In this document: positions 1-21,573 of the stretch, piece by piece
How the letters are laid out: every line of letters starts with the position of its first letter
Position numbering within the stretch: the stretch's first letter is position 1
Assembly: GCA_904063045.1 (NCBI GenBank)
Contig: CAJFCJ010000009.1
Span: forward strand, 2,542,968 to 2,606,967
Length of the DNA stretch: 64,000 nucleotides
Reading direction: 5' to 3'
Source of the DNA: Dimorphilus gyrociliatus
Taxonomy: Eukaryota > Animalia > Annelida
Notes under the pieces: model-generated
The model's database searches: none
The model's input: only the letters and a program-made list of their open reading frames with translations
Told to the model about the DNA's origin: nothing
Program-made: the position numbers and the translations under genes

Positions 1-3000
1 TCTCTTTTACGCAGATAACCAAATTTTTTAATTAATTCATAAGATGTCATAGTATATTGATTCTGGAAAAAATTTGTTATCAATATATAAATTTTATTAT
101 AGTATCTTTATTACTTCAATGGTTACAGTTGGTCCTGGAATGGTTGTAAATAGACCAACTTTCCTTAATAGTCCATTTGTTGGCTCGCTAACTAGAATAG
201 AACCAGGTGAGCATTTTTTTTGTAATTGTCGAGCTATATGAACCGCATCACCAAATACCATAAATTTATCCATCTTTCCTCCAGTCATACAACCAACGAG
301 TTCTCCCGAATGAATTCCAATATTCAATTTAATTTCGTACGATTGGTCCTCAAGAATTGGTCTTTCGTTTAGAGAGTTCCTCAACGATATTGCAACTCTA
401 GCAATATCTAACGCGTGATTTGTATTTGGACAAATTAATCCAGAAACAAGAAGATAAACGTAGCAAGAATGATAAATCTTTATAATAAAGACTGGAATAT
501 TTAAATAGTTTTTAACAAGAAAGAATATAACAAACTCTATCAACTTTATCATTCTTTGATAATAATCTATCAATTCTTTTGTGAAGATCTTGCAATAATT
601 CAATAAGTTTATTAGCATTCATTGATTCAAATTCTTCGTGAAATCTATGAATTTCAATAAAACAAATTGAACATTCTTGTTCTTGATAAACTGGAATTTT
701 AGGATTTATTGACTCGGCAAACTTCTTAACTAAATCCCTAAATGATCATAAATGAACAATCTCTTTACTAAATTATTATAGGTTGTTACTACCTGGGAGA
801 ATAATATTGTATTTTATCAAGAGTATCGCTCTTAGCGTATTCTAATCTCTTATGAGCTTTAAATAGCTCATCTTCTAATGAATCTTGATAGGCATCCATC
901 TCTTTGGTAACATTATCAATGAGGCTTATCTCCCTGAAAATATTCAAATTGTCAAAGGAGATATAATTTAAACTAATAATGCCTACTTTCCTTGAACCAT
1001 ATCTCGTAGTTCTTGACTTAATGCTTTTAAACTGGGTCTCTCCTTAGGCAATTCTTTCCAACATCTGATTATTTGAACGTAATATATTAAGCCTATTATT
1101 TATTATGATATACTTATACTTTGTAATGATCTCCGTAATTAATTTATGGGTATTCTGAAATTTTTCTACAATTTTAGGTCTAAATTTTGGAGTACGCTTC
1201 TTATCTATTATTGCGGCTATTATCTGTTTAGGTCTCATATACTCCCTTTCCAGATAAAATGGATATTTTCTTGTAATTATTTCCAAGAGAATTATACCGA
1301 ATGAATAGATGTCTCCCTCTTTACTTCCCTTTGGTTTTTTACCTCTTAACTGTTCGGGAGATTGCCAAAATCGCTCTTATATGTAATGATAAAATAGTAG
1401 ATCTTATTCGTCTATATAGTTTATATAAATAGTATATTTTCTAACTTATTCCCTCTATGAAATGATCTTTTTCACTTATCAAATAGTTTGTACGAATGTA
1501 ATCTAAACCAAAATCCGTTATTTTTACAGTCCACCTAGTGTCAACTACACAATTTTCACTTTTTAATCTACCATGAAAATTTATAGGACTATTATGCAAA
1601 TAATCTAAACCCTGATGAAATAATCATTAGAATTAAAGTATTGTAGGAATGTTGAATTACACTTTAATTGAATTACTTTGCAAATGTCTATTGAAAATGA
1701 TAGTTCAAATGTAGAATCCAATTTAAATCTTGAATTCTTAAATACTGTATGCAAACTTCCCCTTGAGCAATAGTCCAAAAGTAAACAAGGATATCTATAG
1801 TCTATACATACTCCACGATAAGGATTAATATTTTCATGTTCTATATTTTTAACCTAAATAAAATATAATATAAAATTAATGCAAATTTATGCAAGAACAT
1901 GTTTATTCAATACCAGTTTTAATTCTTGCAATATTTTCTTATTATTCAAATCGAAATTTTTATTTAATGGCTTTACAACTAACATTCCAAACTGAATTTC
2001 AAGGAAAAAGATCATATTTTCTCTTCTAAACTATAGTTATTATTTTTACCTTTTCAGACGTTGCTATATCAGTGTACCTTTTCAGGTCTTCGGATGAATT
2101 TATAAGACTTGAAATATCGCTGTTTGACTAGAGTATTTTATAATATTAGTAACTAATTCGAGTGAATGAAACTATATACAGATTTCGTTATAGAGTTCTG
2201 TTCATCTTTTTCAATGAAGAATAAATCAGCACTTCTTAATAGCCATGAAGATATTCCATACCAACTTTGATCTTCTACAAAACGTCTAGAAAATATCTTT
2301 ATTTTTCTTATTTATCATAATTAATTAATAAAAACTATTTAATCACTTCATTAACCAAATGATTACTATTCCTAGGATTAATGCCGTAAATATCCATAAA
2401 GATAATCTATAGCTTTTTCTTTGTTTATCTAAATGACCAGAGAATGCTATAATAGGAAAATAAATTATTAGTAGGCGTGTTTTAACCTGATTGAGTGCAG
2501 TTTCTTAAAAATCGACAATGAACGTCCGGAGATGGAAATTGTCTATAACCACTAAATAAAGCTTGATTATATTCTCCATTCTTATCCTTTAATAATCTTA
2601 ATCTTCTCCCATCCGAGAAAAAAGTTGAATACTTTAACGTTAACTTTTGATTGGTAAAGACTAAATCTCTAGTTTTTCCATTTGCTAGTGATTATCGATA
2701 AGATTTTTTTGAATAAATTAGAATATATTAGATGACATTATTAATATTAAATTAGCTATACTGACTGTAAAATTGTACTAAGTCTTTTATCACGCGAGAC
2801 ATGTTTCCGTTTTGGGCAATAAATTCCGTACCTACGGCTTCATAAGCTCCTGCTAAGAGCATCGCACTCTCATAAGCTTGCTTCTCTATATATTTAATAT
2901 TCTAAAAGTATATATATATAGAATTTTAAAGTCTAAATATAGTAAATATACACTTACAACATCCGTTATAGGATCAATCCTGTCACGGAAAGAGAAAGAT

Positions 3001-4392
3001 GAATTTTCTGAAAGTTCTTTGACTTTCTTATGAAAATTATCAATATCTTTCCAAGTTGATTGTTGTCTTCTATCGGATAGGATGACAATCTGCCCTTCTA
3101 ATATCTTTAAAAGGTGTCTATTCTTTTCCGGATATTCGAGTAAATCCGCTAAAAATAGCCTTGTTTTATTTAATTATTTTAATGCGTACTTAAGATGTTA
3201 ATCTTACACGATAATCCAAATAAAATAACCTGTACTCCCGCAACAGTTAATCCGCTGTCTCTAAATATATGAAGAAAGCGATGAACTGATTCCCTTTTCT
3301 TCATATAGACAAATATCACTAGAAATATATAAGGTATGTATAAATAGGCCAATATCTCAATTGAGAATATGAAACTGACCGTTAGTTTTACTTAAGAGAT
3401 TGAATAAATTTGTTTCAATTTCCTCTTGTTCGGCATATTCTCTGAGTTGACTACTTTCATTTAACACTAGGAGCCCTTTAATAGGTGGTAGAGACTTTTG
3501 AACTTGACTTACATAAACATTAACATCTTTTCCACTATATTTACACGACTCTTCAATGCTTTCTTTATATTCGTTAGCACTAAAGAGTTTGTTACCAATA
3601 ATACCTAGATTTTCCCATTCAAAATCCTTAATATATAATTAATATCGAATTAGAAATTGCAGCCTATTTTCCAATACAACCTACAATTGTAAGTTTGGCA
3701 ACAGTCTCAGAAGTTTGTTGAACATCTTCGGCAACTGATAGGAAAACTTGTGATCTTTCTTCGTCGTTCAACTCTGAACAACTCCAAGTTATGACTGGAA
3801 TGTGAAATTCTCTAGCTACTTTAGCAATTTGTTTACAAGATTCTAGACAAACTGGACCAATAATTCCATGAATATTAAATTTAATATTTGCATTTAAATT
3901 ATCCCTAATTAATGTTTTTTTATTTCATTGATTAACTGATGTATTATCATTAGGAAAACACTTACAGAAATACATTCCAGAATGCGAGGAGACTTCTATC
4001 GCTTAAACATTGCGTATCAGCAATATAGAAACCTAATCCGCTCTTTCTAATATTTCGATAGCGTCCACTATCTCTTTCAATTTCAGATAAAGCGTAGAGC
4101 ACTGAACCAGGAACGTAGTTAAAACCAGTTGCGGAATTCCATTCTTCGAATTGATAATTAATTGTCTTATTAGAAGGCTATTTACAAAGAATAATAATAA
4201 TGAAACAATAATAAAAGTTATATCATTCTCTTCATCTCTTACATCCCTAATTGATGGATGAAATGGAAGTAGAACCAAAAAATTTAAACTTGAATTACTA
4301 ATTCCATAACTCCAAACTTTAAAGTCGTCTGCTTTTAGTAAATTTAATTCGAGTAATAGAAAACTAATATAAATTGTTATCATTCCATTCAT
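1..4392 (-). CDS. Receptor (membrane) guanylyl cyclase-like protein, multi-exon, 3' end beyond the left edge; catalytic residues degenerate
   Basis: Spliced reading gives a signal peptide ([21 protein letters not shown]), an ANF-receptor-type ectodomain (IADTQC; [12 protein letters not shown]), a TM segment ([17 protein letters not shown]), a kinase-homology domain ([12 protein letters not shown]; [23 protein letters not shown]; WQSPEQL; [11 protein letters not shown]), a coiled-coil linker and a cyclase domain ([10 protein letters not shown]...FGDAVHIA; ORF 97..618). Confidence 0.88.
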
Positions 4393-4579
4393 ATTTATTT
4401 TCACACATACACCGTAACGTTTTAAGATAGATTTGAAAAGCAACAAGTTTACATAACCTTGACATTGAATTTTTATCATTTCTTTCTTTTACAAGTTTTG
4501 TTATAAATATTATTATTACTATTATTATTGTTATTATTGTTATATTGTTGAAAAATACAATAGAAATGAATTAGAATTT

Positions 4580-5413
4580 TTAAGCGTTGTTTTCCTTTTC
4601 TTCAATTTTCTTTTGAAGTTTTGCAACCATCTTTTCGGATAATACTGTTATTTGTCCTTTAGTTTCCACAAAGTTAGTAAAACCTTCAACAGATTTCTGT
4701 CCAGCGTATTTATAACCTCCTCCTATATTTCCTTTTGGGTATAGGACGAACATTGGTACCTAAAAGCATGTAAAAATAATTGAAAAAGATGCGAATGTTC
4801 TTTTTCCTTTTACCTTTACTTCACTTTCGTTTAATAAACTATTTTCATTCAAATTTACTTTAGCAATAACGACGTCTGATCGGTTAGCGAAATGCTCTCC
4901 TACACTCTCCCAAATGGATTTCATCTTTTCGCAATGAGTACATCCAGCTGTATAGAACATAACAAAAATATGCCTTGATGGTTTGGTTGCTAATTGACGA
5001 AATTTCTCTCCATTTAAATCCCAAACTGATCCAGAACTCCAATCTTCTGATAGAGTTCCACTTGTTGCAAACTTTTCGATATTTTCGTGCTTGTGTGGAC
5101 GAAGTAAAAGCTGTACTGGTGGACGATTTGGCATTGGTATTTCATGAAGGGTTTCTGGTATCGACGTAGCTTTTACAGTTGGTAATATCGAGGGCTTATT
5201 CGCGAATTGCTACAATACAAATTGATAGGATTATGTATTAAATATCAATAATAACACTAAAAAGATATTAAAATTAACCCATAGTTGTTCCCATCTACAA
5301 ATTCTTTGTGTTATTCCATAACCTCTATTTTCCTTTGATTCTCTCTTTGCCCGATAATAGAGAGAGCTAACTCCTATAATTCCTAAAAAAGATGCTCTTC
5401 TAAATATGTACAT
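4580..5413 (-). CDS. Single thioredoxin-domain (PDI-like) protein, 3 exons, CxxC = CTHC
   Basis: Exons ~5413-5279, ~5209-4811, ~4760-4580. Contains HIFVMFYTAGCTHCEKMKSIWESV...DVVIAKVN and a VPMFVLYP cis-Pro region. Basic/hydrophobic N-terminus; no KDEL. Confidence 0.78.
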
Positions 5414-5570: not shown

Positions 5571-5790
5571 CTGGAAACTGAGATTTTTGGAGTGGCTAAT
5601 TGAACGGAAGAGGATGTTCAGAGATTTCTTACTGATTGCGAGTTAAAAGAATATAAACAACAGTAAATATAAAATGTTATTGATTGTTTACTCTACTTTA
5701 TCTTCGATTTTGTTTATAAATTAGCTTTCGAAAATGTAACGGTAAAAATTCTTTTACTCAACGCGGAAGAATGACCTTTGCCTTCCAACA
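5571..5790 (+). pseudogene. Decayed SAM-domain relic of an ARM-TIR-SAM paralogue
   Basis: Reads VAN*TEEDVQRFLTDCELKEYKQH|FRKCNG, with an intron at 5663-5724 in the same position and phase as the SAM intron of the intact paralogues. The conserved Trp codon is TGA and similarity is lost after CNG. Confidence 0.7.
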
Positions 5791-6043
5791 ACTGATTGCA
5801 TGAAGTTGGAGATAAATTTGAAGAATCTACATTGAGAGAAATATGGAAGAATTATTAAGGGTTTAACTGTTGTTTGCAGAGGTTTATATTATAGTTGAAA
5901 AGAGCATAAGACATATTGTATTACATGAGAATATACAATGTTTTGTTGAATAGTGTAATTTACAATCATAAACAATAAATATACTGAAGATGGCGTTAAA
6001 AACACTTTTGCTATGGTTATTAAGTAAACAATTTGAACTATCA

Positions 6044-8091
6044 ATGGGTTGTGGAGCAAGCACTCAAAATGCTAATAAACCTGGTAAATCTAAGAATTTA
6101 TATAATACTCAGTCTTTAAAAAAGTCTAAAGAAGATCTACAACTGGTGTTGGAAGCAGCTGAATCCTTTACTAACGAAGAATGGAAATCTTCAAAGAGTT
6201 CTTCTATAAAATTACACTTGAGATGGCTGGGATATTGCGATGCAAAAATTAAAGCTGCAATAATAAATGACTCTAAATTTTCAAAAGTACTTCCAAAAAT
6301 GTATATTGAATTAATAGAAAAATTTGCAATTTGTGAAGAAGATCCAGTGTATGACATTGTACGCTCCATTCAAACAGTATTATGGAATGGTACGGATGTC
6401 AGCGAAGAGTTCTGTAAAGTAGCCTTAGATAGCAAAGTTCTTCATTTAATAATTGAAAAAATACTCCCGCATTGGAGATTTGAATCAAAAACTCTTATTG
6501 ATGAAAGTTTTATAACTCCTGGCTTATCTACTATGCAGAGACTACAATTTATTAAAGGTGGTTTAGGAATAATGCATAACATTCTCAGATTGGAAGACGA
6601 GTCGAGAAAGATTGTCAGAGATATTGGTGGAATTGAAGCATTCAAAAAACTGTTAATTGTTGATGAACCTGATAAGTTAGATATAATGATAGAAGCTAAA
6701 TGCAATATTATTCTGGCATATCTTATCAAAGAGGATGAAGCTGATAAAGTCGATACAAATAGTAGGGTAATTAAATTTATATCATTCTTACTTGACGGCG
6801 CCTTCAAAAGTGAAACTCACCGTTTCAAAAAATATGGATTTGCTGTTGATGAGACGCTAATGGCTATGAATAAATTAGCCATTAGTGAAAATAATAAAGA
6901 ACTTCTTGCCGATCATATTCCCCTTTTAATAGAAGTGTTAAAACATCCACATAATCCTAAAGAACAAGAATATTCGGCGAAATGCCTTTGGACATTATCA
7001 TTTAATGAAAAGTGCGTACGTGTACTTGAATCGGAAGAAAATTTAAAAACTATTCAATCTTTAAAGAAAACTGGTAAGAATGCAGCTATAAAACGTTCAG
7101 CGGAAGGTATTTTATGGCAAATAGATCAAAAAAATAAAAAACAAGATGATATAGAAGTTAATAATAATTCTAAAGAGGGTCATATAATGTTAAGTTATCA
7201 ATGGGCCTATAAAGCAATTGTCTTCAAAATACGAGATTTTCTTAAAACAAATGGATTTCACGTCTGGATTGATGTTGAATCTATGGGTAGGCTATTTATA
7301 ATCTCTGTTTTTCCATCATTCAACATATAATCACTCTTTCTTTCTAACAAGAGGGTTCAACTCTTGATTGTATGGCGAAAGCTGTTGAAAATTCTTCCGT
7401 AGTTTTAGCTTGCTTCTCACAAAAGTATAAAGATAGTCCGGCTTGTAGAAGTGGTATGATTTATAAATTTCATTCATCTCTTTTGCATCTTTTTTCCTGA
7501 AATATTACTAAAATAGAGGCAGAGTACGCTTATAGAACAAATAAGGAAATTATACCGATTAAAGTGGAAAGAGATTACATAGCTGACGGTTGGTTGGGTA
7601 TACTTTTGGGAACAAAATTATGGATTGATTTTGCAAAGCCTGAAAAAGTAAATGCGTCATTTGAGCAGCTATTAGCAATTTTAGGGAGCAAAGGAAAGCA
7701 TCCTCAAAAAGCAAAAGCAATTGCAAAAGAAACTACATCTACCTTACAGAGTCAACCAGCGAAATCTTATGTAAATACCGATAGTTCTAGTATTGAAAAT
7801 TGGACAGAAGCGGAAGTGGGAACATTTTTTAATGATATTGGTTTGGGGAAATATGCAACACAGTATATATTCCAATACTACTATTATTATAATAATTGAA
7901 AATATCGAATTATTCGTTTATTGTCACTTTTTCATTTCAGTTTTCAAAGTTGTAATGGTAGCGGTCTTTTGGAACTGAAACAAATTCGAGAAATAAGCCT
8001 AGAATTCTTTTATTCAACATTAAAAAAGGAATTTAGCATGCCATTGACTGATTGTATAAAATTGGCAACAGCGTTGAAAAAGATGTATTAA
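6044..8091 (+). CDS. ARM-TIR-SAM protein, paralogue 1 (~613 aa)
   Basis: Exons 6044-7286, 7352-7453, 7517-7862, 7941-8091 (1842 nt, open frame). ARM-like helical repeats (DETLMAMNKLA; AKCLWTLSFN), TIR_2 (HIMLSYQW...VWIDVESM...CFSQKYKDSPACRSEAEYA...GWLGILLG), SAM-like C-terminus (IENWTEAEVGTFF). Start MGCGAS preferred over the upstream ATG at 5990. Confidence 0.88.
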
Positions 8092-8721
8092 TATCAATAG
8101 AGAAATTTGTAAAAACTTTATTCTCTCATTCTTTCTTAATAAAACAAAGTATTATATGTTGAAGCACAGTTAACTGTTATAAAAAGTTGGGTATTCTTAT
8201 TAAGAATTAAGTGAACAATTATCAATTAAGAAAATCTTCAGAAGATTGAATTACTTTACAATTATCAACTGTTTCTAAATATAAACGTGAGAAATATGTC
8301 AGTGGAACGGTAGTTCAACCTAATCATTCCAATCAACTTATTTTTTATTGCGAATTACAGTAATATTAAATGATTTATCTCTCCTTGAGAGCTGTTTTCC
8401 AACTTATTTTCCCTTTTATTCCTCTCTCTCTCTCTTGTTCCAAGTATCCAAAATTTCAAATATCAAGTGTTATAGTGCAAAGAAAATATGAATTTATCCA
8501 AATTATCTTATCAATTTCTAGTGTTCAAAATAAGTGAATAACTATTAATTTTACCGATTACGTAAAAGTCAATTTATCAGAATTATGCAATTATTGTCAT
8601 TGTAATTTTCTGCTATTATTACAAAAAGTATTTACAAACTGGCAATACGTTCTGTTGGATTTTTCTCCTTAGATAAACAACATCTTCTATTGTTTTGTTG
8701 TCATTTTTAATCAGATATTGA

Positions 8722-10876
8722 ATGGGGTCAAACTTGAATAAACTGGCAAGGAATAGCGAAGAATTAAATTCTTCTGATAGGATATTATTAAGTTATCAAT
8801 TGGATTATCAGTCAACTGTCAAAAAAATAGGAAATTTTCTTATTTCCGAAGGATATGATGTATGGATTGATAAAGAATCAATGGGGAAAGAACAAAATAA
8901 AGTAGAATGCAGGTCGGAGGCCATTGAAAATGCAGATGTAATTGTTGTCTGCTTTTCTCATAAATATACATATAGCGATATTTGTAAAAGTGGTACGTAA
9001 GTTTTAATAATAAACTTTTACAACATATTAACATAATTCTATAAATAGAAGCAATGTACGCTGTTCATCTTAAGAAGAAGATTATTCCAATTAGATTAGA
9101 AATAAACTACAAACCTATTGGATGGTTAAATTCTCTAATTATTATTAAACCTTATATAGATTTTTCTATTGAAGAAAACCGCAATATGGCACTTGAAAAA
9201 CTTGTATATTCTATAAGATCGGAAAATAAGATTAGCATCTTTAAGAGTAGTAGAAATCCATTCAAAAATTATTATTCAAATGTTAAAAATTCACTTAGAA
9301 TACAAGTTGAACAAATTGAAAAGTTAAAGGAAGAAGATTTGAAGATAAACATGGAATTTAATAGAGGAATTTTCACACAATTTCTTCTTCTATGTAACAA
9401 AGTTTTCATTCCTCAGGAAAAGATTTTCAATGATAGAGAAATCGTTGATAGAATACCGGAATTATTTTTAAATATTCATAGAAAATATCTCCTTGGCAAC
9501 GAAAACATCGTATTTACTGTTTGTTATGATGTATCGTTATTTTTATTGAACGGAACGCATTATTCTAATTATTTTGGAAGAAAGATTTTTGAAGATGGTT
9601 GCATAGAGTTTATTGTTAAAAATATATTGGGGAGCGATCTTTTATCTTTGAGCGCTCTGGACACGGAAGTAAACTCATCCTCTACTCTATCATCTAAACA
9701 GGTGATAAAATTAGTTAGATGTTATCTAGGAACGTTATATAATATCTTAAGATTAAATAAAGACTTACGAAAATCTATAAGGAACTTTGGTACAATCGAT
9801 GAAATAAACAACAAAATTGAACAACTTAGCAAGTATAAAGAAATTGGAAGTCCTCTTATCATTAAAGCTACTTGCTTAATGCTTTTGACTTATCTGGTTG
9901 ACGATGTAGAAAGGGAAAAACTTAAAGCGAGTCACGAAATGTTAACATTTATGGCTGCCGCACTTGAAAGTGCACTTGATCATGAATGCCACCAGTCAAG
10001 TTACGGTTTCTACGCTGAAGAAACTCTTCATACAATCGTTCAATTGGCCATTGACGATGAAAAGAAACAATTAATGATTGAATATATCCCTCTATTGTTT
10101 AGATGTATTAAGGAAGCTTTAACTGAAAGAGAGCAGAGGCTCTCATTAAAATGTATTTACACTTTATCATTTCACGAAGAATGCGAAGAGCTTATTCAGC
10201 TAAAAAGGAATATTCGATTATTAAAGACAATTTGCGAGAAGGGTTTAAGTGACAACATCAAACAACTTGCGAAAACTGTTCTTTACGAGATTAACCGACG
10301 AAACAATGTACAACAGATTAATACTATTCCTAATAAACCAATTAACGGTCATATAATGTTAAGCTATCATTTAAATAACCAAGAAATTGTTTTAAAGATA
10401 AGTAACTATTTGAAATCCAAAGGATACTCTGTATGGATTGATGTTGATGAGATAAGTGAGTCGTTTTCGTAAAGTATAATAGTTTATTTATTATATGTAT
10501 CAATTAAGGAGATCATCCGCTCGATTCAATCTCTGAAGCAATTACAAATGCACGTGTCCTTCTTGTATGCTTCTCAAGAGAGTATAGTCAGAGTAATACC
10601 TGTCGAAGTGGTAAGATGCTTTAAATAGATAGAAAAAGTCAATCATTACAGGAATGTTAAAAAAAAAAAACAGAAGCCGATTATGCATTCCGACTACACA
10701 AGGATATGATTCCTTTGAAATTGGAGAAAAATTACTCTGGAAGTGGATGGTTAGCTAGAGTATTAGACTTAAAATCAACTATTGATTTTTCGGATGATAA
10801 TGATCATAAATCTTCAATTGAAAGTTTATTAGGACAACTTGGATATGAAGGTTTAAAAACAGAAATTAAAGATTAA
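8722..10876 (+). CDS. TIR-ARM-TIR protein, paralogue 2 (~660 aa, no SAM)
   Basis: Exons 8722-8992, 9049-10455, 10509-10610, 10674-10876 (1983 nt, open frame). N-terminal TIR (ILLSYQ...VWIDKESM...CKSEAMYA...GWL), central ARM region, C-terminal TIR (HIMLSY...CRSEADYA...GWL), then stop. Confidence 0.85.
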
Positions 10877-10988
10877 ACATTGATAGAATATTAAGAGTAT
10901 TTTACTATTTTAATATGTTATTTTTGTATTATTTAATCCTATTCAAATTAAAGCAATAATTAAAATCTATCAGTTTCAATTTGCAGAT

Positions 10989-13433
10989 TTAATATCCCTG
11001 TATATCGTCATTACAACAAAATTCCACAATAAGATGACCCGGTATAGGTTGAAAACCTTGTTTCTCACCACTTATTAAATCTAATTTTTTCTTTTTCATA
11101 TCTTCGCTATTTATATCACGTCCATCAATTCTTCCCTCTCCAATGACTGTACTTCGAAAAGTTCCATGTTCTAGAATCTTTTATTTTTGGAAATAGTATC
11201 ACTTTAACTTTGTTAAAAGATACTTTTCTCTTACCTGAATAACTATTGGTTCTGTAACTTTTCTACGATAGAAGAGACAACGAATATCGTATTTACAATT
11301 GAATTTACCAGAATTTCTCATTAATTCTTTAGCTTTTGTCGGTACTCCTTGTACTCTATCCTTTTCGCTCTTAACAACAATAAATGTTATAAAATTATCC
11401 GCTCTTGCATTACTCGTATCAGGTATCTCTAGACCATCAACCTCTTTAATGATAACTCTTGTCGCCAAATTATATGGAGCTGTACAGCAATTTAATTGTT
11501 CAGGAACTGGAATTTTTAATTCTCTTTTGTTGTTAAAATAATAAATTCACTAGTTTTAATATGATGATTGCTTAAGAGAATATCTTATGTTTGTATTTTG
11601 ATTACCTTGGTGTCATTCCAGATGCTGTGTAAATCCTTAAAAGGAACTTGCCAACAATATTAGGTTCAACAGTGCTTGGTACTAAGATATATCTACCTCT
11701 TAGTAATGAGCTTTTAAGATAAACGCTTCGAACTCTTCTATATTTGGTAACAACTATTGTCTCACCTTTCTCGTGTATTCTATATTTTCTGAAAAGAGAT
11801 TTGTGTAAAGGTTATTATAGGTTAATAATACTTTTCGATTCATTTTTTTACTGGTTATCAGCTACCCTCATTATATGAAATCCAATAGCTCTGATTGAAG
11901 CTCCAACACTCATATCAGGTCTTATATCGGTAGCCTCTAAGGAGAATGTTGCTCCTTCGTGAACAGCCGCAATTTCAAATAGAAATTGAGGATTGTCAAG
12001 AAATGAACTATGCTTTTCATTACCACCGCTTCTATCCCATTTGGTTCCCTTTGCTCCGTGTGTCCAGCTACTATGGAATGTAGTTTCCTTATATGATTTG
12101 ATTGTTGTTAAAAATGATGTATTGACAAAATGATTAATATAAACATGAGTAAAATTTGTTAAAAAATCATCTAGATCCATCCAAAATTCACTTTCATTAT
12201 TATACAATATACCCATTGCATCCCTATCTTTTTGAGATAAATACGACATTTCTCTTGATTGCTCACACCATCTACCTTTCCAGTCTCTATTACCAAGAGG
12301 ATTTCTTAACCGTATTAGATAAATTGTATCTGTGTGAAGAGGATCTTGTAATCTCTTATCAACAAATGATTCTACGACGGAAGTTATAACATAGCCAAAA
12401 CCCTTATATAAACCATTTGGGGATATTTTCAATTTTTCAGATTGAGGACATTCTATTAATGTTGTCATAAGGGCATTGTTCCTATTAGCATCCAAAAGAA
12501 TTCTAAATAGTTGGTGGCGATATTGATCTTGAGATAAATTATAATCTTCGAAAAGTATAGATTGAGCAACACCACCTGTAAAATCTACCAAAGTATTACA
12601 AGGATTGCTCAAGTGCATAGTCTCGTAGTCTCCATAAAGTCTAGAAGAACGTAATAAAGGATTGAAGATTAAATAGGAGGGATATATGAATTTATTAATT
12701 TACTTTGCATAGGCTTTTTGGCAAAGTGACGCCCAAAATTCATTTCTACTTTTTGAATTACAATAGAGCAGCTTACCATTTTTAGTAGGAAGTAAATCAT
12801 CAATTACAACTTGATACCATTTACCTAATCTCCAGAAATTAAATTTAAAGATACCTGCATATTCGTTATCATTTGTCCATTCTTGCTTTTTACAGTCTGG
12901 TATTACCTGTATAGTTTCATTCAATTTCATTTTAGAATATATAAGATATATAATATACTTTATAAAGCATCTTTTGATTAGTTAATAGGGCACAACAGCA
13001 GGATGCAAACCATCCAGATCCATACATTCCTTCGTGTATATCATCTGTTGTAGCACCGTCAACCACTAATCTTGGAACTTTACACAACTCTTTCGGTCTC
13101 TTCCACTCAACTCTTGTATCAATTTTACTGTAGAACATTGATTTATTATTGGCGGGAAATTCTGGGTCAACAAATAATTCTCCTTTAGAAAGTAGTCTCT
13201 TCTTAAGCTCATTATATTTTTGATTACGGAACGCTAAGATTTTACTCAAACCTCCAACTCTATTTTGAACATCACCCTATGTTTATTTTTTATTAGAATA
13301 TAAATAGAAATAATCAATTAATATTAAAAAATAATAAGAAGAAAGGCATAAAAAAAGTAGATCCTTAATAGATTCTGTTGGATATTATTACCTCGCTACC
13401 TCCATAAACATGAATATTAGTCGAATCTTCCAT
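10989..13433 (-). CDS. Calpain-5/6 (TRA-3-type) protein: CysPc, domain III and C-terminal C2; catalytic Cys and His replaced
   Basis: [89 protein letters not shown], followed by a C2-like tail. About 7 exons. The QGxLGDCW motif reads EGMYGSGW and GHAY reads GFGY. Confidence 0.88.
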
Positions 13434-15067
13434 TACAGTTTATTTATAGGATAAAATATCTATTACATATAGTTTAATAAATATATTATTAAAAATTATT
13501 TATTAAGATTTTTAATCAACTAATATAAACAATGTTTAAACTTTTAAATTGTTAAAAATATGGTAATTTAAATAAAACATAAATAAAGAACGATATTAAA
13601 GATATATTAATAAACTGAATATATAGAAAGATATAGAGATATGAAGTTAAAAATAATTTTATTATTTGAATGTTTTCGTGTAACACTTTTATTTCGATTT
13701 ATAAAATTTAAAAGACTTTTTATTCGTTTCACTATTTTTTTTGCACCTATTTGTTAAATTATTTTATAAAACAACACAAAAGACAAGCGCATAATTGACA
13801 CTTCTCTTCAAAATCACTTACAAGTACTCTATATGAGTTCTATCTACTCTGCCCACGTCTAAGGGTATATAAGGAGGTATAACGCAACGTGTCAGTGCAG
13901 TTCGAAATGGAGATGGACGAATAGACATGAAAGTGGTATCGTGGCTTTAAAGATGTTGTTTGTGAAGTATTGGCACTTGCTTGCTTAGACTTTAAGGAAT
14001 CTTCGATCACTGAAAGTGTCATCTTCGAACTGCCAATTTGCGAATGCCAAAAAAACAGAAAGAAAACAAGCAACGAAAAGTCTAACACAGTTGGAAAGCT
14101 TGAATAGCAAAGCCTTTCTAAAGCCAAATGGGAACGACGACGACAACAACATGAATCATAGAATGGTAGATCTATAAAGAGATTGCTGAAAACAAACTAT
14201 TGAGTGTAGAGGAATACAAAAGGTCTTGTGAATATATTACATATGAATCTATGGATTGTTAAAGTATAATGATTACGTTATTCGATGTAATAAGGTAATT
14301 TTTCTGCGTGGAACGTGTAAAATGTTCCACCTCGGAAAAATTGGGGAATTTGGTAATAGCGAAGATAAGTATATTTCGAAGTGGACAAATCATTCTAAGA
14401 TTATAAGTCCTGTTCTTTGGAGGGTGCAATCTTATGTAAGGCTGAAGATTTGCTTTTTGAGGTATTCTAGCTGGCAACGGTTGACATGTGGTTATTAGAG
14501 AAAGAGCCAAAAAAGTAGCTTCTAACGGCCATATCGTCGAATTCAGGTGATGTATTTCCTGTCGCAACCAGAGTCAATGATATATATGTGAAAAAAAATT
14601 ATATGTATATATTGTTATTAAATAATTGTGGCATTTTAAAAAAAAATACAGAGCTGCGGTAGCAAAAACTTGTGAATTTTTTTTAATTTAATAGGGAAAT
14701 CGTTTCCCGAAAACAATGTAGATTATATAATAATTTAAGAAACAGACTACAACAGTGGTAAATCTACTTAGTGCAAATGTTCTTCTCTCCTTCATTTAGT
14801 ATTTCTTACTTGGTCGACAAATATCTTTAAAACTTCTGATTTACTATTTGATAAGAATGTTTGTTGCATTCAATTTCTTGATAATCCATTATTTTATTTA
14901 GTTTCTTGAATAATGCTTTTATTTCTTAATGTCTTAACGACGCTAAAATTAGGATAATTAGGGCAATTTAGGATATTATGCAATCTAATATTCTCGGCGA
15001 AGCCTTATTTGAAAAAAATACAGATGGCGCTTGATGATGTTATGACAACAAATACTAATACACCGTT

Positions 15068-17186
15068 ATGGGCTCAGCTCCCAGTAAAAAAAATTTCACA
15101 CAACCGAAATCGAGCTCCGATTCTAGTGACAATAACAAACCAGAAGATTTAGATTCAATCACAGATATTGCTGTTGACTCAGGACCAGACGAATATGAGG
15201 CTGAAAAAATTCCAATAATAGAAAGGCTCAAACTAGTTCAACCTTTTGATAGAAAAGCTTGGTTGGAATATGCCAGTCAAAGTAAAACCGTTTTTGGAGA
15301 TTTTAGGATTCTATGGGAACAAAACGTAAAGGCTCAACGAAATGTATTTAATGATATAAAAATAGTGAGCGATATACCTAAATTATTTAATACTGTGCTC
15401 GAAATGTTCTTCTTAGATGATGACAACTTTTCATTTCCTATTGTTAAAGATCTCACAGGATTTATGCATAACGCTTCACACTTTTCTTCAAAATTTTCCA
15501 AGATGATTTTTAATGAAGGATGCGTTGATCTTATCATGAACAGAATCATTTCAAATTGGAGATTAGCCATTGAAACTCTCTTTGAAAGTGACTTTAACGA
15601 AAAGTGTGGCATAAGTATTAACGATAGATTTCAAGTACTATTCGGATATTATGGAATACTTCATAATGTAATAAGACATAATAGTGAAACCCGAATTCCA
15701 TTAAGGAGTCTGGGACTTTTGGAAAAGGTGAACACGTGCATTGAAAGCTTGAATAAAATAAAATCTATTGCACCTGCAGAATTCTTGAAACTTAGTTGCT
15801 ATTTTATCCTGGCGTACTTGATTACGGAAGGTGAGCAAGATCTTGTGGAGACGAGTCGGCTAACTCTTACATATATTGTAACTATACTTTCAAGCGCTTT
15901 AAAATATGAGAATCATCATTCATCGGATTTCGGTTTCGATTCAGAGGAGACTCTTCTAGCAATCAATCAATTAGCTAAGAGTGATAAAAATAAAGAAATT
16001 TTGGCAGGACACCTTAAATTAATATTTCAGGCAATGAATGAAGCTCTAAATGAAACTGAACAACAACATGCTTTGAATTGTCTTTGGACTCTATCATTCA
16101 ATGAAAAATGTAGAGATTATATTAAAAGACCGACAAATATAAGAAACTTAGAGAATGTGTCTAAACAGGGAAAAAGTATAGCTTGCCAACGATTAGCCAA
16201 CAATGTCCTTTTTGAAGTGAGAAAAGCTGATAAAATTATTGAAGAAATTAACACACAGGCTGGTGAGATCAAAGGTCATGTTATGCTGAGCTATAGTTGG
16301 AAATTTAAATCAATCGTTTTTAAAATTCGTGATTTTCTAAGAAGCAAACAATACAATGTTTGGATTGATGTCGATTCTATGAGTTTGTAGTAAATTTAGC
16401 TTTTTGATTATTAATATTTTAATAGTTTTCCTTCTTCCTATAAAAGAGGGTTCAACGATTGATTGTATGGCTGAAGCTGTGGAAAATTCCAGCATTGTTA
16501 TTGTTTGCTTTTCGCACAAATATAAGGAGAGTACGCCGTGTAGAAGTGGTAAGGTTGAACTTATAAATGATTAAATGATCGCGTCTCTATAAATATCTTC
16601 ATTTTATACTATTAGAAGCCGAATATGCTTATCATCTTAAGAAAGAGATTATTCCAGTTAAAGTTGAGAAAGATTATAAAGCGGATGGATGGCTCGGTTT
16701 TATAGTAAATACAAGGCTGTGGATTGATTTTACAAAATCAGAGGTCAGCGTTGCGTATGAAAAACTTTTAAATCAATTAGGATCTAAAGGAAAGCGAAAT
16801 AATAATGCCGTCCCACGAAAAGCGGTAATACAAGAGATTAAAGCTGAACCTTCATACCAATCCAACACCAATTCTGAAACAAAAAGTGTAAAAGACTGGA
16901 CAGAAAAAGATGTCCAAAATTTTATTATCAATGAATGTGGATTGAAAAAATATGGTTATCAGTAAGTTTCGTTCTAAACAAACCGACTAATTAGAAGTTT
17001 ATATAAATTTACTGTAATTATTCTCGTAACAGCTTCAAAAATTGCTCTGGTCCCGAATTATTAGAGCTAAAAAGACTAAGTGAATTAAGTCCGGGATCGT
17101 TTTACTCTTCTATAAAAACCGATTTAGGATTACCGTTAATCGACGGTTTAAAATTATCAACAAATCTACAGCGATTAGATTGTTAA
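15068..17186 (+). CDS. ARM-TIR-SAM protein, paralogue 3 (~638 aa)
   Basis: Exons 15068-16382, 16447-16548, 16616-16961, 17033-17186 (1917 nt, open frame). Same motifs and intron positions as paralogue 1; starts MGSAPS. Confidence 0.88.
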
Positions 17187-17695
17187 AAAAGATAATTACT
17201 TCTGTTAATAAGGAAGCTAATTTTCTCTTTTTTAATAAAAAAGTTCTTTTCAACAGATAAGAAATATAAAAGGTTATTTAACTATCTTTTTCAGTAATCT
17301 TTTCTTTATTCTGTTCATTGTATTATAAATAATGTAAATTTTTTTGTCATATTTAATATTTTCATATAATTAAATAGAATACTCAATCGATGACTCACTG
17401 CCTTAAGTATATATACCGTATATATATATATATAAATTACGCTATTAGTCTATTGATTGGTCAGAATAATAAATAATTAATTGGGTGAGTCATCCAATTG
17501 ATTATTGAACTTGTAAGCAGGATTACATTATCAACAATGTTAGAAATGAAAATAAGCAATCGGAATTCCTCTTTGTAATGTCGGTATATAGTCATTTAAG
17601 GCCCACGACACAGTTTATTCACTCGTATTTTTCTCTCTAACACGAAGGATTTCACAAAGATTTTTTTATAAAGAAGTATTAATATTTACATTGAA

Positions 17696-19658
17696 ATGAA
17701 TATTAGAGAAATAAAGAATACCATAAAATTTAAAATTCAATTAGCTAGACAGTCCACGAAATCAGATTGGCCGGAACAGATAAAGAATTTCGCGACAGAT
17801 GGATTATTCGTAGCTTTACTGACGGAATGGAAAACTAGACAGCTACCTCTTGAAGACATATTTTCTAATACTGATTTAATTCGTGACTTACCAACGTTAT
17901 TCATAGATCTCCACGAAAGATTTTTGATTAAGGAAACCGATTTTATATGCTCAGCTATTGAAGATATATGTATATTTTTTCTATCGGCAACACATTATTC
18001 TAGTGTATTTTGTAAAAGAATTTTTCAAGATGGTTGTATTGAATATATGATAGAAAAAGTATTATCTCATTCATTATTATCAATTGATAACTTGTTAAAT
18101 CCGCAAAAAGTAAAAAATAATAATTTACTCAATTTTAAAAGCGCCTTGATATTTCGTTATATTGGTATTCTACATAATATACTCAGACTGAATGAAGATC
18201 TAAGAATTCCAGTGAAAAATCTTGGTACATTAGATTTAATGATTGATATGATACATCAATCAGTTTATTATACAGAGTCCGAAGCTAGTAGGTTCCTTAA
18301 AGTTTTTTGTTACATAACTTTAGCATATTTATTGGATGAAACTGAAGTTAATCTCATGCAAACTTGTTTACAAACTTTAAATTTTATAAGGGATATGCTT
18401 AAAAGAGGTCTTGAAAAGGCTGACCATCAGTCTGAATATGGTTTTTATGTTGATGAAACTCTACACGCGATAAATCAATTGGCGAAGAATGATGATAATA
18501 AGAAATTAATGAAAGGTTATATACCATTATTGTTTAGGGTGATAGAACATTCTAATGATGTTGAGGAACGATGCGCTTTAGATTGTTTATATACTCTCTC
18601 TTTTGATGATGAATGTAAAACTGTAATAAAGAAAGAAGGTTATATAAGAATATTACAGAAGTTGTCTGAATATCATACAAATACTGATAGAAAAGATATA
18701 GTTAAAGCAATTCTTTGGGAAATTGATGAAAAATACAGAAAGGAGTTGACACTTTCAAATAAACAATCGAAAAAATTTGATTTTATGCTTAGTTATCAAT
18801 GGCAATATCAAAAGGTTGTGATGAAAATCAGCAATTCTCTCAAATCACTAGGATATAAGGTTTGGTTAGATATTGAACAAATGAGTAAGTAATCGTAAAC
18901 ATATTTAACTTATTATCAATAATTATAATACTATAAATAAAGATGGTTCAACAAATGAAGCTATGGCGTATGGTATTGAAAGTTCAACGATGTTTATTAT
19001 GTGCTTTTCGAGATCGTACAAAAATAGTAACAACTGTAGAAGAGGTATCTATATATCCATTTATGATTTTTTCATTATTATTTCTTAAATAGGCTTAAAT
19101 ATGAAATAGACTGTTGATTTTTAGAAGCGGTATACGCCAGTGCCCTAAATAAGGTGATAATTCCTTTAAGAATGGAGAAATACTATCAGGGGACTGGATG
19201 GCTTGGAATAATAATTGGAGATAAGTTATGGGTAGATTTTTCAGATTTAGAGAAATATCAATCATCTTTTAAAGGTCTTACGCATCAAATAGATATCCTG
19301 AAACATAAAGATCATAGCAATATTCCGATTACCACTAACCCTTCACCTATAGAATCAAACAATCCTTTAGAGTGGCCTAAAGATAAGGTTCATGATTTTA
19401 TTAAAAACGATTGCGGGTTAAAGGAATACTCTTATCAGTAAGTTGTTGAGTTATTAATATATTTATACATGTATAAGTAAAATGATGATCATTTATCATA
19501 GCTTCGAGGATCTTACTGGCGCAGAATTATTAACGTATAAAACTCTATGCCAAGAAAATCTTAACAATTTTCTCTTATCATTAAAAGACGATTTGAAAAT
19601 CCCGTTTAAAAATGCAATGAAATTTTCAACTAGTTTAAGACAGTTAAAAACTGATTAA
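17696..19658 (+). CDS. ARM-TIR-SAM protein, paralogue 4 (~586 aa)
   Basis: Exons 17696-18884, 18943-19044, 19125-19437, 19502-19658 (1761 nt, open frame). TIR FMLSYQW...CRREAVYA...GWLGIIIG; SAM PLEWPKDKV. The true 5' end is uncertain because there is no Gly2. Confidence 0.85.
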
Positions 19659-19967: not shown

Positions 19968-21200
19968 ATGGGTTTGGCAACTAGTTGTATGGTTAGAAAT
20001 AGAAGAATACGATCGGAGTATGAAAATGAAATTTATTTAAATAAGCCTAGCGACAGCGATGATAATTCATTAGAAGAATATGATATTGAATATTACGAGG
20101 AAACGAAATGCGCATTCAAGAGAAGAATGGTACAAGCTTTAAATTGGAGAAGAGAAGATTGGATAAGAAGTTATGGTGGTGAATTGGTTGATAATCTTAT
20201 ATTTTTAGAGTTTATTTGCAATTGGAAGAAAAATTCAATACCCTTGGAAGTAATTTATGCAGATGAAGATATATTTGAAGACTTACCAGAGTTATTTATT
20301 AAGTTAATTAACGTTTGTTTACTATCTGAGGAAGTGTACATTTATCCATTATGGGATTTTGGTATTTTTCTTCAAAAAGGTACCAGCGTTTCGTCGGAAT
20401 TTGGTAGATTACTCTATGATCAACAATGCGTTGAATTTCTTATAAAAACAGTACTTCCTCATCATAAACTTGCAATCGGATCTTTTGAAGATGACGTTGA
20501 ACCTTGTGGATTTTTGATAATACTTTTCTATATAAGAGCTATTCATAATATTGTTATGTTACACGATGATTTAAGAATGCCTGTTAGAGATATTGGCGCA
20601 CTTGACGAGATAAGTAAGAAACTTGACCCGCTAAAAAGAATTAACTACGATAATAGCGATGAACTAAAATTATTTGAAGCAATTAGTAAAATGACATTAT
20701 CTTATTTAATAAAAGAGGGAGAAGATGATCGTTTTCTAACAAATGCTAATAGTCTTTGTTTCATACTGAAAAATCTTATTGAAATAGAGAAAAGTTCTCA
20801 TTATAATGCGCTAAGCAAAGATGAGAAATTAATTAAAGAATCATTTTATATCGAAGCAGACGAAATACTCTTTTCAATTAATCAAATAGCACAAAATGAG
20901 AAATACGACGAATTATTCTCAGAATTAATTCCAGCTTTATATAGATTCATTAAAGATACTACGAAAATAAGAGACAAGAAATTAGCATTAGATTGCTTAT
21001 GGACTCTATCCTTTTACGAAAATTCTAAAAAGGTATTCAAGAGTCAAAAACTTTGTGAAAAATTGCATAAAATCTCAAGGAAAGCCTCAAATGTTACTGT
21101 TCAAAAATCTGCTGAACGAATTGTTAGAGAACTTAGTAAGAAAAATCGTGCTAGTGAAAGTAGTTCATTGTCTAAGCACAACGGAAGCTTAACCTATTAA
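19968..21200 (+). CDS. ARM-only paralogue 5 (410 aa, single exon, no TIR or SAM)
   Basis: Aligns to the ARM exon of paralogues 1-4 (DEILFSINQIAQNE; LDCLWTLSFYE) and stops at NGSLTY*, where the others begin the TIR. Starts MGLATSC. Confidence 0.82.
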   Translation: MGLATSCMVRNRRIRSEYENEIYLNKPSDSDDNSLEEYDIEYYEETKCAFKRRMVQALNWRREDWIRSYGGELVDNLIFLEFICNWKKNSIPLEVIYADEDIFEDLPELFIKLINVCLLSEEVYIYPLWDFGIFLQKGTSVSSEFGRLLYDQQCVEFLIKTVLPHHKLAIGSFEDDVEPCGFLIILFYIRAIHNIVMLHDDLRMPVRDIGALDEISKKLDPLKRINYDNSDELKLFEAISKMTLSYLIKEGEDDRFLTNANSLCFILKNLIEIEKSSHYNALSKDEKLIKESFYIEADEILFSINQIAQNEKYDELFSELIPALYRFIKDTTKIRDKKLALDCLWTLSFYENSKKVFKSQKLCEKLHKISRKASNVTVQKSAERIVRELSKKNRASESSSLSKHNGSLTY

Positions 21201-21573
21201 AAATCTTGTTCAATTAATACAAAACTTGTCTTATTATTAATTAGATTATACTTCAAACGTTAGAGTTTAGATATACGAAAATTCCAAATTACATCCAATC
21301 TAAACAGGAACAATTATTCCTCACATAAGATAATTGTAAGAAACAAATAATCTTACCTCCTGATACTTTACGTAATATGATTAGATAATGGTTATTCTAT
21401 ATTCAAAAGCTGAATAATTCATCTATAATTTAAATATTTAAATATTACAAAAACATACCTACATACACACGCATACGTGCATAGATATTACATAAACATA
21501 CACGAACATATACATACATAAATTTGCATATATATATATCTAAATTTGAATAATTTGAATAAGAAGCAAAACA

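Follow-up and report, generated by a model that had tools for sequence, protein, structure and literature searches.

Tandem ARM-TIR-SAM genes of Dimorphilus gyrociliatus share an invariant TIR glutamate whose codon is split by an ancestral intron

We have analysed a 64,000 nt stretch (the window) of contig CAJFCJ010000009.1 of the annelid Dimorphilus gyrociliatus, which carries a group of genes coding for TIR domains. Four of these genes, called here A, B, D and E, are tandem, anciently diverged paralogues, and together they encode five TIR domains. The data are best read as an array of ARM-TIR-SAM paralogues in which the Glu of helix alphaC is invariant and in which the Glu codon is split by an ancestral phase-1 intron, older than the protostome-deuterostome split and inherited by every copy. 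We put the probability of this reading at about 0.85. The family and two of the five Glu residues (E473 and E1040) are already present in public tables, and the split codon is an ordinary inherited intron.

The first-pass annotation of this DNA had described five intact TIR domains, each with its Glu codon divided by an intron between named bases. We checked each junction by script on the window sequence, and 5/5 are correct (Table 1). All five introns have GT..AG ends and are in phase 1, and splicing creates a GAG or GAA codon within the motif C-R/K-S/R-E-A-x-Y-A. The count was also complete for the window: a six-frame scan of the 64 kb with a hidden Markov model (HMM) of the family TIR found exactly five TIR domains and nothing else significant. 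At a sensitive setting (--max, E<=10) the scan likewise gave no resemblance to a TIR on the 3' side of gene F (21200-21400). Complete open models of A, B, D and E assemble across every Glu-splitting intron, and the Glu residues are E449 in gene A (TIR at about 7178-7692), E91 and E594 in TIR1 and TIR2 of gene B, E473 in gene D and E431 in the model of gene E. Gene A rests on an open spliced model with matches to Pfam TIR_2 on separate exon pieces, and the first exon of gene B alone scores 40.6 bits against TIR_2. The TIRs of the four paralogues are 40-67% identical in pairwise comparison and their synonymous sites are saturated.

Transcript and annotation data agree with these models. The RNA evidence consists of the assembled contigs of one public run, which behave as a transcriptome and cover genes A and B. 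These contigs skip 6/6 introns of the two genes at exactly the modelled bases, including all three Glu introns. At the Glu intron of gene A the contig joint is 7452/7516, with GT..AG ends and a contig depth of 148.8, and the entire spliced coding sequence of gene B lies on one transcript contig of 2053 nt. There is no retained-intron contig for the three Glu introns of A and B; the bin depth is wholly explained by spliced contigs, with zero coverage of the introns. For genes D and E there is an annotated protein, DgyrCDS7910 (P0004; CAD5119282.1, UniProt A0A7I8VSJ3, 1195 amino acids). Residues 1-625 of P0004 are identical to model D, and from residue 626 it is identical to model E from residue 17; E473 of model D is also E473 of P0004 and E431 of model E is its E1040. 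This agreement means that the annotation uses the same splice sites for both Glu introns of D and E.

The annotated protein P0004 (15068-19658) fuses the two genes. At residue 625 it exits gene D, and the annotated intron used for this is about 600 nt long, against a genome median of 66 nt; the last 13 codons and the stop of D, together with the start of E, fall within it. The C-terminus of gene D itself matches the SAM ends of homologues, and because of this we consider the fusion to be probably an annotation chimera. Separately, in one contig of low depth (16.9) position 7288 is joined to 7357; the join has AG..GT ends and three foreign letters, and the contig has loose ends at 7392. The contig is most likely a paralogue transcript placed at 90% likeness and not an isoform of gene A.

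The window genes are members of a large, bilaterian-wide ARM-TIR-SAM family in which the Glu is invariant. With a profile of the ARM parts, 2116 proteins are found at E<=1e-3, of which 105 reach E<=1e-30; for matches outside the genus, E values go down to 1e-95. Members include proteins of Owenia, Haliotis, Sinanodonta, Lingula, Strongylocentrotus, Patiria, Amphiura, Holothuria, Ptychodera, Saccoglossus, Branchiostoma and Styela, some of which carry the rule-based UniProt names 'ADP-ribosyl cyclase/cyclic ADP-ribose hydrolase' or 'NAD(+) hydrolase SARM1'. The family is recognized by ARM repeats, a TIR with the motif CR[ST]EAEY, a C-terminal SAM and common intron positions, and all of these were found. 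Spliced TIR D and TIR E score 77.9 and 75.0 bits against Pfam TIR_2 (PF13676), above the gathering cut-off of 28 bits. In the Owenia (P0010) and Branchiostoma (P0012) proteins TIR_2 is followed by a C-terminal SAM_1 above the cut-off; the SAM of the Dimorphilus copies is below the Pfam threshold, yet can be aligned to homologues that are above it. The gene A TIR is 80% identical to that of a syntenic orthologue on another contig (L001), with a non-synonymous divergence (dN) of 0.12 and saturated synonymous divergence (dS), a comparison which indicates that this TIR is under purifying selection.

Genomic loci of family members were fetched, their introns were mapped by exact protein-to-DNA threading, and 11 sequences were placed on a common alignment. 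A phase-1 intron interrupts the Glu codon in the annelid Owenia, the mollusc Haliotis, the echinoderm Strongylocentrotus, the hemichordate Ptychodera, the cephalochordate Branchiostoma and the tunicate Styela, as well as in the gene A orthologue on L001. It is the only intron common to 11/11 mapped sequences. The next most shared is another phase-1 intron, 34 codons upstream (the -34 intron), present in 9/11; the two occupy the shared columns 647/1 and 681/1 of the intron matrix. Together they bound an exon of 102 nt, which has the same length in Dimorphilus, L001, Owenia, Branchiostoma, Ptychodera and Strongylocentrotus. The presence of the Glu-codon intron in the same place across phyla means that the position is inherited, so the five Dimorphilus sites are copies of one intron older than the protostome-deuterostome split and represent one event and not five. 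The first-pass annotation had offered 'just an inherited intron position' as one of two explanations, and this explanation is borne out by the same codon and the same phase in six other animal phyla or subphyla.

The Glu had also been identified in advance as the alphaC residue at the catalytic position of NAD+-cleaving TIRs, and several kinds of alignment and modelling agree in placing it there (the position of ThsB E85 / SARM1 E642). We counted its conservation by HMM tabulation over all retrieved proteins, rather than in an alignment selected by motif. The residue is Glu in 125/125 complete TIR domains among the retrieved relatives. The same tabulation contains 18 gaps, which are open reading frames (ORFs) that end at or before the exon end (three of them exactly at '...CRS'), and one 'G' at the Glu column, apparently from a mis-spliced model. 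The family profile aligns the Glu with that of 'DWVHKE' in Caenorhabditis elegans TIR-1 (8p2m), a SARM1 orthologue, and with 'DEL' of Cat1 (9mud, E 1.4e-8), the best PDB sequence match of the profile. The residue register is taken from TIR-1; human SARM1, owing to a long betaC-alphaC insert, aligns to the profile only to position 64, before the Glu. A single-sequence search of PDB with the first 90 amino acids of gene B was not informative, the best TIR match being RPP1 at E 0.44.

Structural work covered TIR D (P0004:399-532). Its AlphaFold model has a predicted local distance difference test score (pLDDT) of 92.4, and Glu75 of the model, which is P0004 E473, falls in helix 70-81. Foldseek ranks the human SARM1 TIR (6o0u) first, at E 3e-6. 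With VIA-align, superposition on SARM1 561-700 gives Z 17.8 and a root mean square deviation of 2.0 Å over 124 residues, and Z values of 17-19 against solved TIR domains identify a TIR fold. Additionally, a published survey lists the two annotated domains in Table S2, where GLU 473 (A0A7I8VSJ3_2) is 0.47 Å and GLU 1040 (A0A7I8VSJ3_1) 0.75 Å from ThsB E85, measured between Calpha atoms after TM-align, and assigns both to the 40%-identity cluster A0A0B7AZE4_1 (Hurieva et al. 2026, bioRxiv 10.64898/2026.04.20.719644). The Glu of A, B1 and B2 is placed by full-length alignment to the family HMM, and that of D and E also by the published Calpha distances.

On sequence and model grounds, it is plausible, at about even odds, that these TIRs cleave NAD+. 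Among non-Toll animal TIRs the Glu is present in the majority, and many make cyclic ADP-ribose (cADPR) in a Glu-dependent way (Hurieva et al. 2026). By analogy, from the combination of ARM, SAM and a TIR_2 domain with Glu, we infer that the proteins would work most like autoinhibited TIR enzymes of the SARM1 type. An N-terminal myristoylation motif would anchor the protein to the membrane and the ARM repeat would restrain the TIR, as in SARM1. The C-terminal SAM, or the second TIR in gene B, would drive oligomerization; once assembled, the TIRs would create the NAD+ pocket, where the Glu would act to give ADP-ribose or a cyclic form of it.

Several points weigh against our overall reading. In Table S4 of the survey the 'Active' column is blank for four isolated TIRs of the same cluster tested in E. 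coli (Chlamydomonas A0A2K3E7X5, Branchiostoma A0A8J9W3M3, Lepisosteus W5N735 and Phallusia A0A6F9DHT8; Hurieva et al. 2026). The TIRs of Hydra TRR-2, SPARTA and MyD88 tie with SARM1 in VIA, which means that fold alone does not separate an enzyme from a scaffold or adaptor, and the placement of the Glu holds at the level of helix and Calpha and not of side-chain orientation. Assembled contigs are unable to reveal rare retained-intron isoforms. Finally, the fact that a single intron is kept universally could hint at constraint, even in Styela, where most other introns have been replaced, and it has been kept in the D. gyrociliatus genes though their ARM-region introns were lost.

Some of these points lend themselves to a different explanation, in which the proteins are adaptors without enzymatic activity and what preserves the Glu is a role in structure or at an interface. 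The lack of recorded activity in the E. coli lysates would fit adaptors, as would the fact that MyD88 and TRR-2 are no worse matches to the model than SARM1. Moreover, the Glu is insufficient for activity: TLR2 and IL-1R9/10 have it, pointing away from the pocket, and show no activity (Hurieva et al. 2026). However, the known-active controls RUN1, RPP1 and RPS4 are also blank in Table S4, which shows that the assay has false negatives, and a putative near relative, the oyster TIR A0A8W8J0Z4 of a neighbouring cluster (K1QUY0_1), which has the motif CRREAAYAS like gene E, was scored as a cADPR producer (Hurieva et al. 2026). Adaptors would also leave the unbroken conservation of the Glu across phyla to be explained, since scaffold TIRs vary at this position (Ala in human TLR7/8, Ser in TLR9; Table S3, Hurieva et al. 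2026). Purifying selection on the gene A TIR and the ADP-ribosyl cyclase names given to homologues by UniProt rules point the same way. We regard adaptors as possible, with the odds clearly against them.

A second alternative concerns the intron. The first-pass annotation had proposed that it might be a safety switch, and a developed form of this idea is that retention of the Glu intron, or skipping of the 102-nt exon, is regulated, and that only the fully spliced mRNA gives an active, potentially lethal NADase. It is true that the Glu codon arises only after splicing, that no other position is conserved in every mapped sequence, and that the preceding exon lies between two phase-1 introns, so that skipping it stays in frame. 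Retention does bring a stop within 1-15 codons, but this holds for 12/12 introns of A, B, D and E, as is to be expected of AT-rich introns, and the Glu intron is not special in this respect; the proposal as first made is not supported. In the D. gyrociliatus genome the median intron length is 66 bp, splicing is adapted to introns of small size and ancestral introns have been kept to a high degree (PMC7854359); beside this median the Glu introns, at 56-80 nt, are of ordinary size. Conservation of ancestral introns is expected in slowly evolving lineages, and depth in the three introns examined is fully explained by spliced contigs. Among the data examined there is no sign that the Glu intron regulates activity, and we consider regulated splicing of this kind very unlikely. 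We give equally little credence to its evolutionary extension, in which the Glu intron and the symmetric exon would have been kept in every copy for more than half a billion years, also where most of the gene's other introns were lost or replaced, as alternative splicing yields isoforms without catalytic activity, either in frame or truncated, which hold a dangerous NAD+-consuming enzyme in check. Least probable of all is that introns were gained repeatedly and independently at a favoured site in the Glu codon. Nothing speaks for this beyond the recurrence itself, whereas codon, phase and flanks (C-R-S/T, E-A-E-Y) are alike in 11/11 sequences, the -34 intron accompanies them in 9/11, and a single ancestral intron is far more economical; we treat its chance as negligible.

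The closest described system is the published cluster A0A0B7AZE4_1, an ARM(TPR)-TIR group in which D and E are listed as the fused A0A7I8VSJ3 (Hurieva et al. 2026). Its members share the motif S-x-K-Y-K-x-S-x-x-C-R-S/T-E-A-E-Y with the window genes; gene structure is not treated in that paper, genes A and B were not identified in it, and the four assayed members are those not scored active. Cnidarian (Actinia), flatworm (Macrostomum) and green-algal (Gonium, Chlamydomonas) proteins are also listed there as members. The NAD+ hydrolases SARM1 and TIR-1 resemble the window genes in having ARM, SAM and a TIR_2-type TIR, the Glu (at 'HKE' in TIR-1) and the betaA 'ISY' and betaB 'V-W/F-x-D-V' motifs. 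The order of domains is different, being ARM-SAM-SAM-TIR in SARM1 but ARM-TIR-SAM with one SAM in A, D and E and TIR-ARM-TIR in B. SARM1 has a mitochondrial leader, in contrast with the myristoylation-type MGxxxS start of the window genes, and identity between the TIRs of SARM1/TIR-1 and those of the window is about 17%. Orthology with SARM1 was considered and rejected, since the ARM-SAM-SAM-TIR architecture is not found in these genes. The bacterial TIR NADases ThsB (Thoeris) and Cat1 share the TIR fold with the alphaC Glu; unlike the window proteins, they serve in prokaryotic defence and combine the TIR with other domains, ARM and SAM being absent. The experimentally active oyster protein A0A8W8J0Z4, whose sequence C-R-R-E-A-A-Y-A-S ... 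G-W-L resembles CRREAVYAS of gene E, belongs to a different 40%-identity cluster. Elsewhere the D. gyrociliatus genome encodes a 2178 amino acid protein whose TIR, A0A7I8VYT1_1, was assayed as well, and its 'Active' entry is blank (Table S4, row 137; Hurieva et al. 2026).

Retention of the Glu in most non-Toll animal TIRs is a published generalization and the finding matters little as it stands. The Glu-codon intron may nevertheless be a handy marker of ARM-TIR-SAM membership and of mis-annotated models. Additionally, a Glu that is kept without exception, yet occurs in isolated TIRs that are not scored active, argues for looking at activity in the full-length or SAM-oligomerized proteins.

Table 1. 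Genes of the array and introns that split the Glu codon, in window coordinates
Feature	Position	Strand	Description
Gene A	6044..8091	+	ARM-TIR-SAM, 613 aa; exons 6044-7286, 7352-7453, 7517-7862, 7941-8091
Intron, gene A TIR	7454-7516	+	63 nt, phase 1, G7453/AG7517, GTATGA..AAATAG; peptide KYKDSPACRS-E-AEYAYRTNK
Gene B	8722..10876	+	TIR-ARM-TIR, 660 aa; exons 8722-8992, 9049-10455, 10509-10610, 10674-10876
Intron, gene B TIR1	8993-9048	+	56 nt, phase 1, G8992/AA9049; peptide KYTYSDICKS-E-AMYAVHLKK
Intron, gene B TIR2	10611-10673	+	63 nt, phase 1, G10610/AA10674; peptide EYSQSNTCRS-E-ADYAFRLHK
Gene D	15068..17186	+	ARM-TIR-SAM, 638 aa; exons 15068-16382, 16447-16548, 16616-16961, 17033-17186
Intron, gene D TIR	16549-16615	+	67 nt, phase 1, G16548/AA16616; peptide KYKESTPCRS-E-AEYAYHLKK
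Gene E	17696..19658	+	ARM-TIR-SAM, 586 aa as modelled; exons 17696-18884, 18943-19044, 19125-19437, 19502-19658
Intron, gene E TIR	19045-19124	+	80 nt, phase 1, G19044/AA19125; peptide SYKNSNNCRR-E-AVYASALNK
Gene F	19968..21200	+	ARM-only paralogue without TIR, 410 aa, single exon (P0003); context, outside the five TIRs

The SAM domain is missing from the spliced model of gene B. TIR1 of this gene (8722-9230) is without the -34 intron found in the other four TIRs and has a 2-residue insertion there; its Glu-splitting intron is kept. The letters 'CRSE' are also present by chance at residues 63-66 of gene B. Exon 2 of gene B had no match in a word-index search of proteins, and for exon 1 of gene A the matches were limited to gene F and two Logan ORFs.

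The start MGxxxS/T is found in genes A, B, D and F and also in hemichordate, amphioxus and tunicate homologues (P0009, P0012, P0013 and P0015). N-termini such as MGCGAS (gene A), MGSNLNK, MGSAPSK and MGLATSC fit the N-myristoylation consensus M-G-x-x-x-S/T, and this pattern suggests that members of the family may be anchored to membranes. Gene E as modelled is without such a start.

The contig that carries the gene A orthologue, L001 (1-10000; Logan SRR23372229), is syntenic with positions 1-5400 of the window: there are pieces of a receptor guanylyl cyclase and a minus-strand thioredoxin-domain gene, followed by the orthologue itself. Past the orthologue about 2 kb remain to the contig end, without an obvious counterpart of gene B. 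Finally, there is a short remnant of a SAM-coding end at 5571-5830, just 5' of gene A, which reads '...TEEDVQRFLTDCELKEYKQQ' and is followed by a GT intron and then a stop-containing frame. It has the look of a degenerate end left by one more paralogue.

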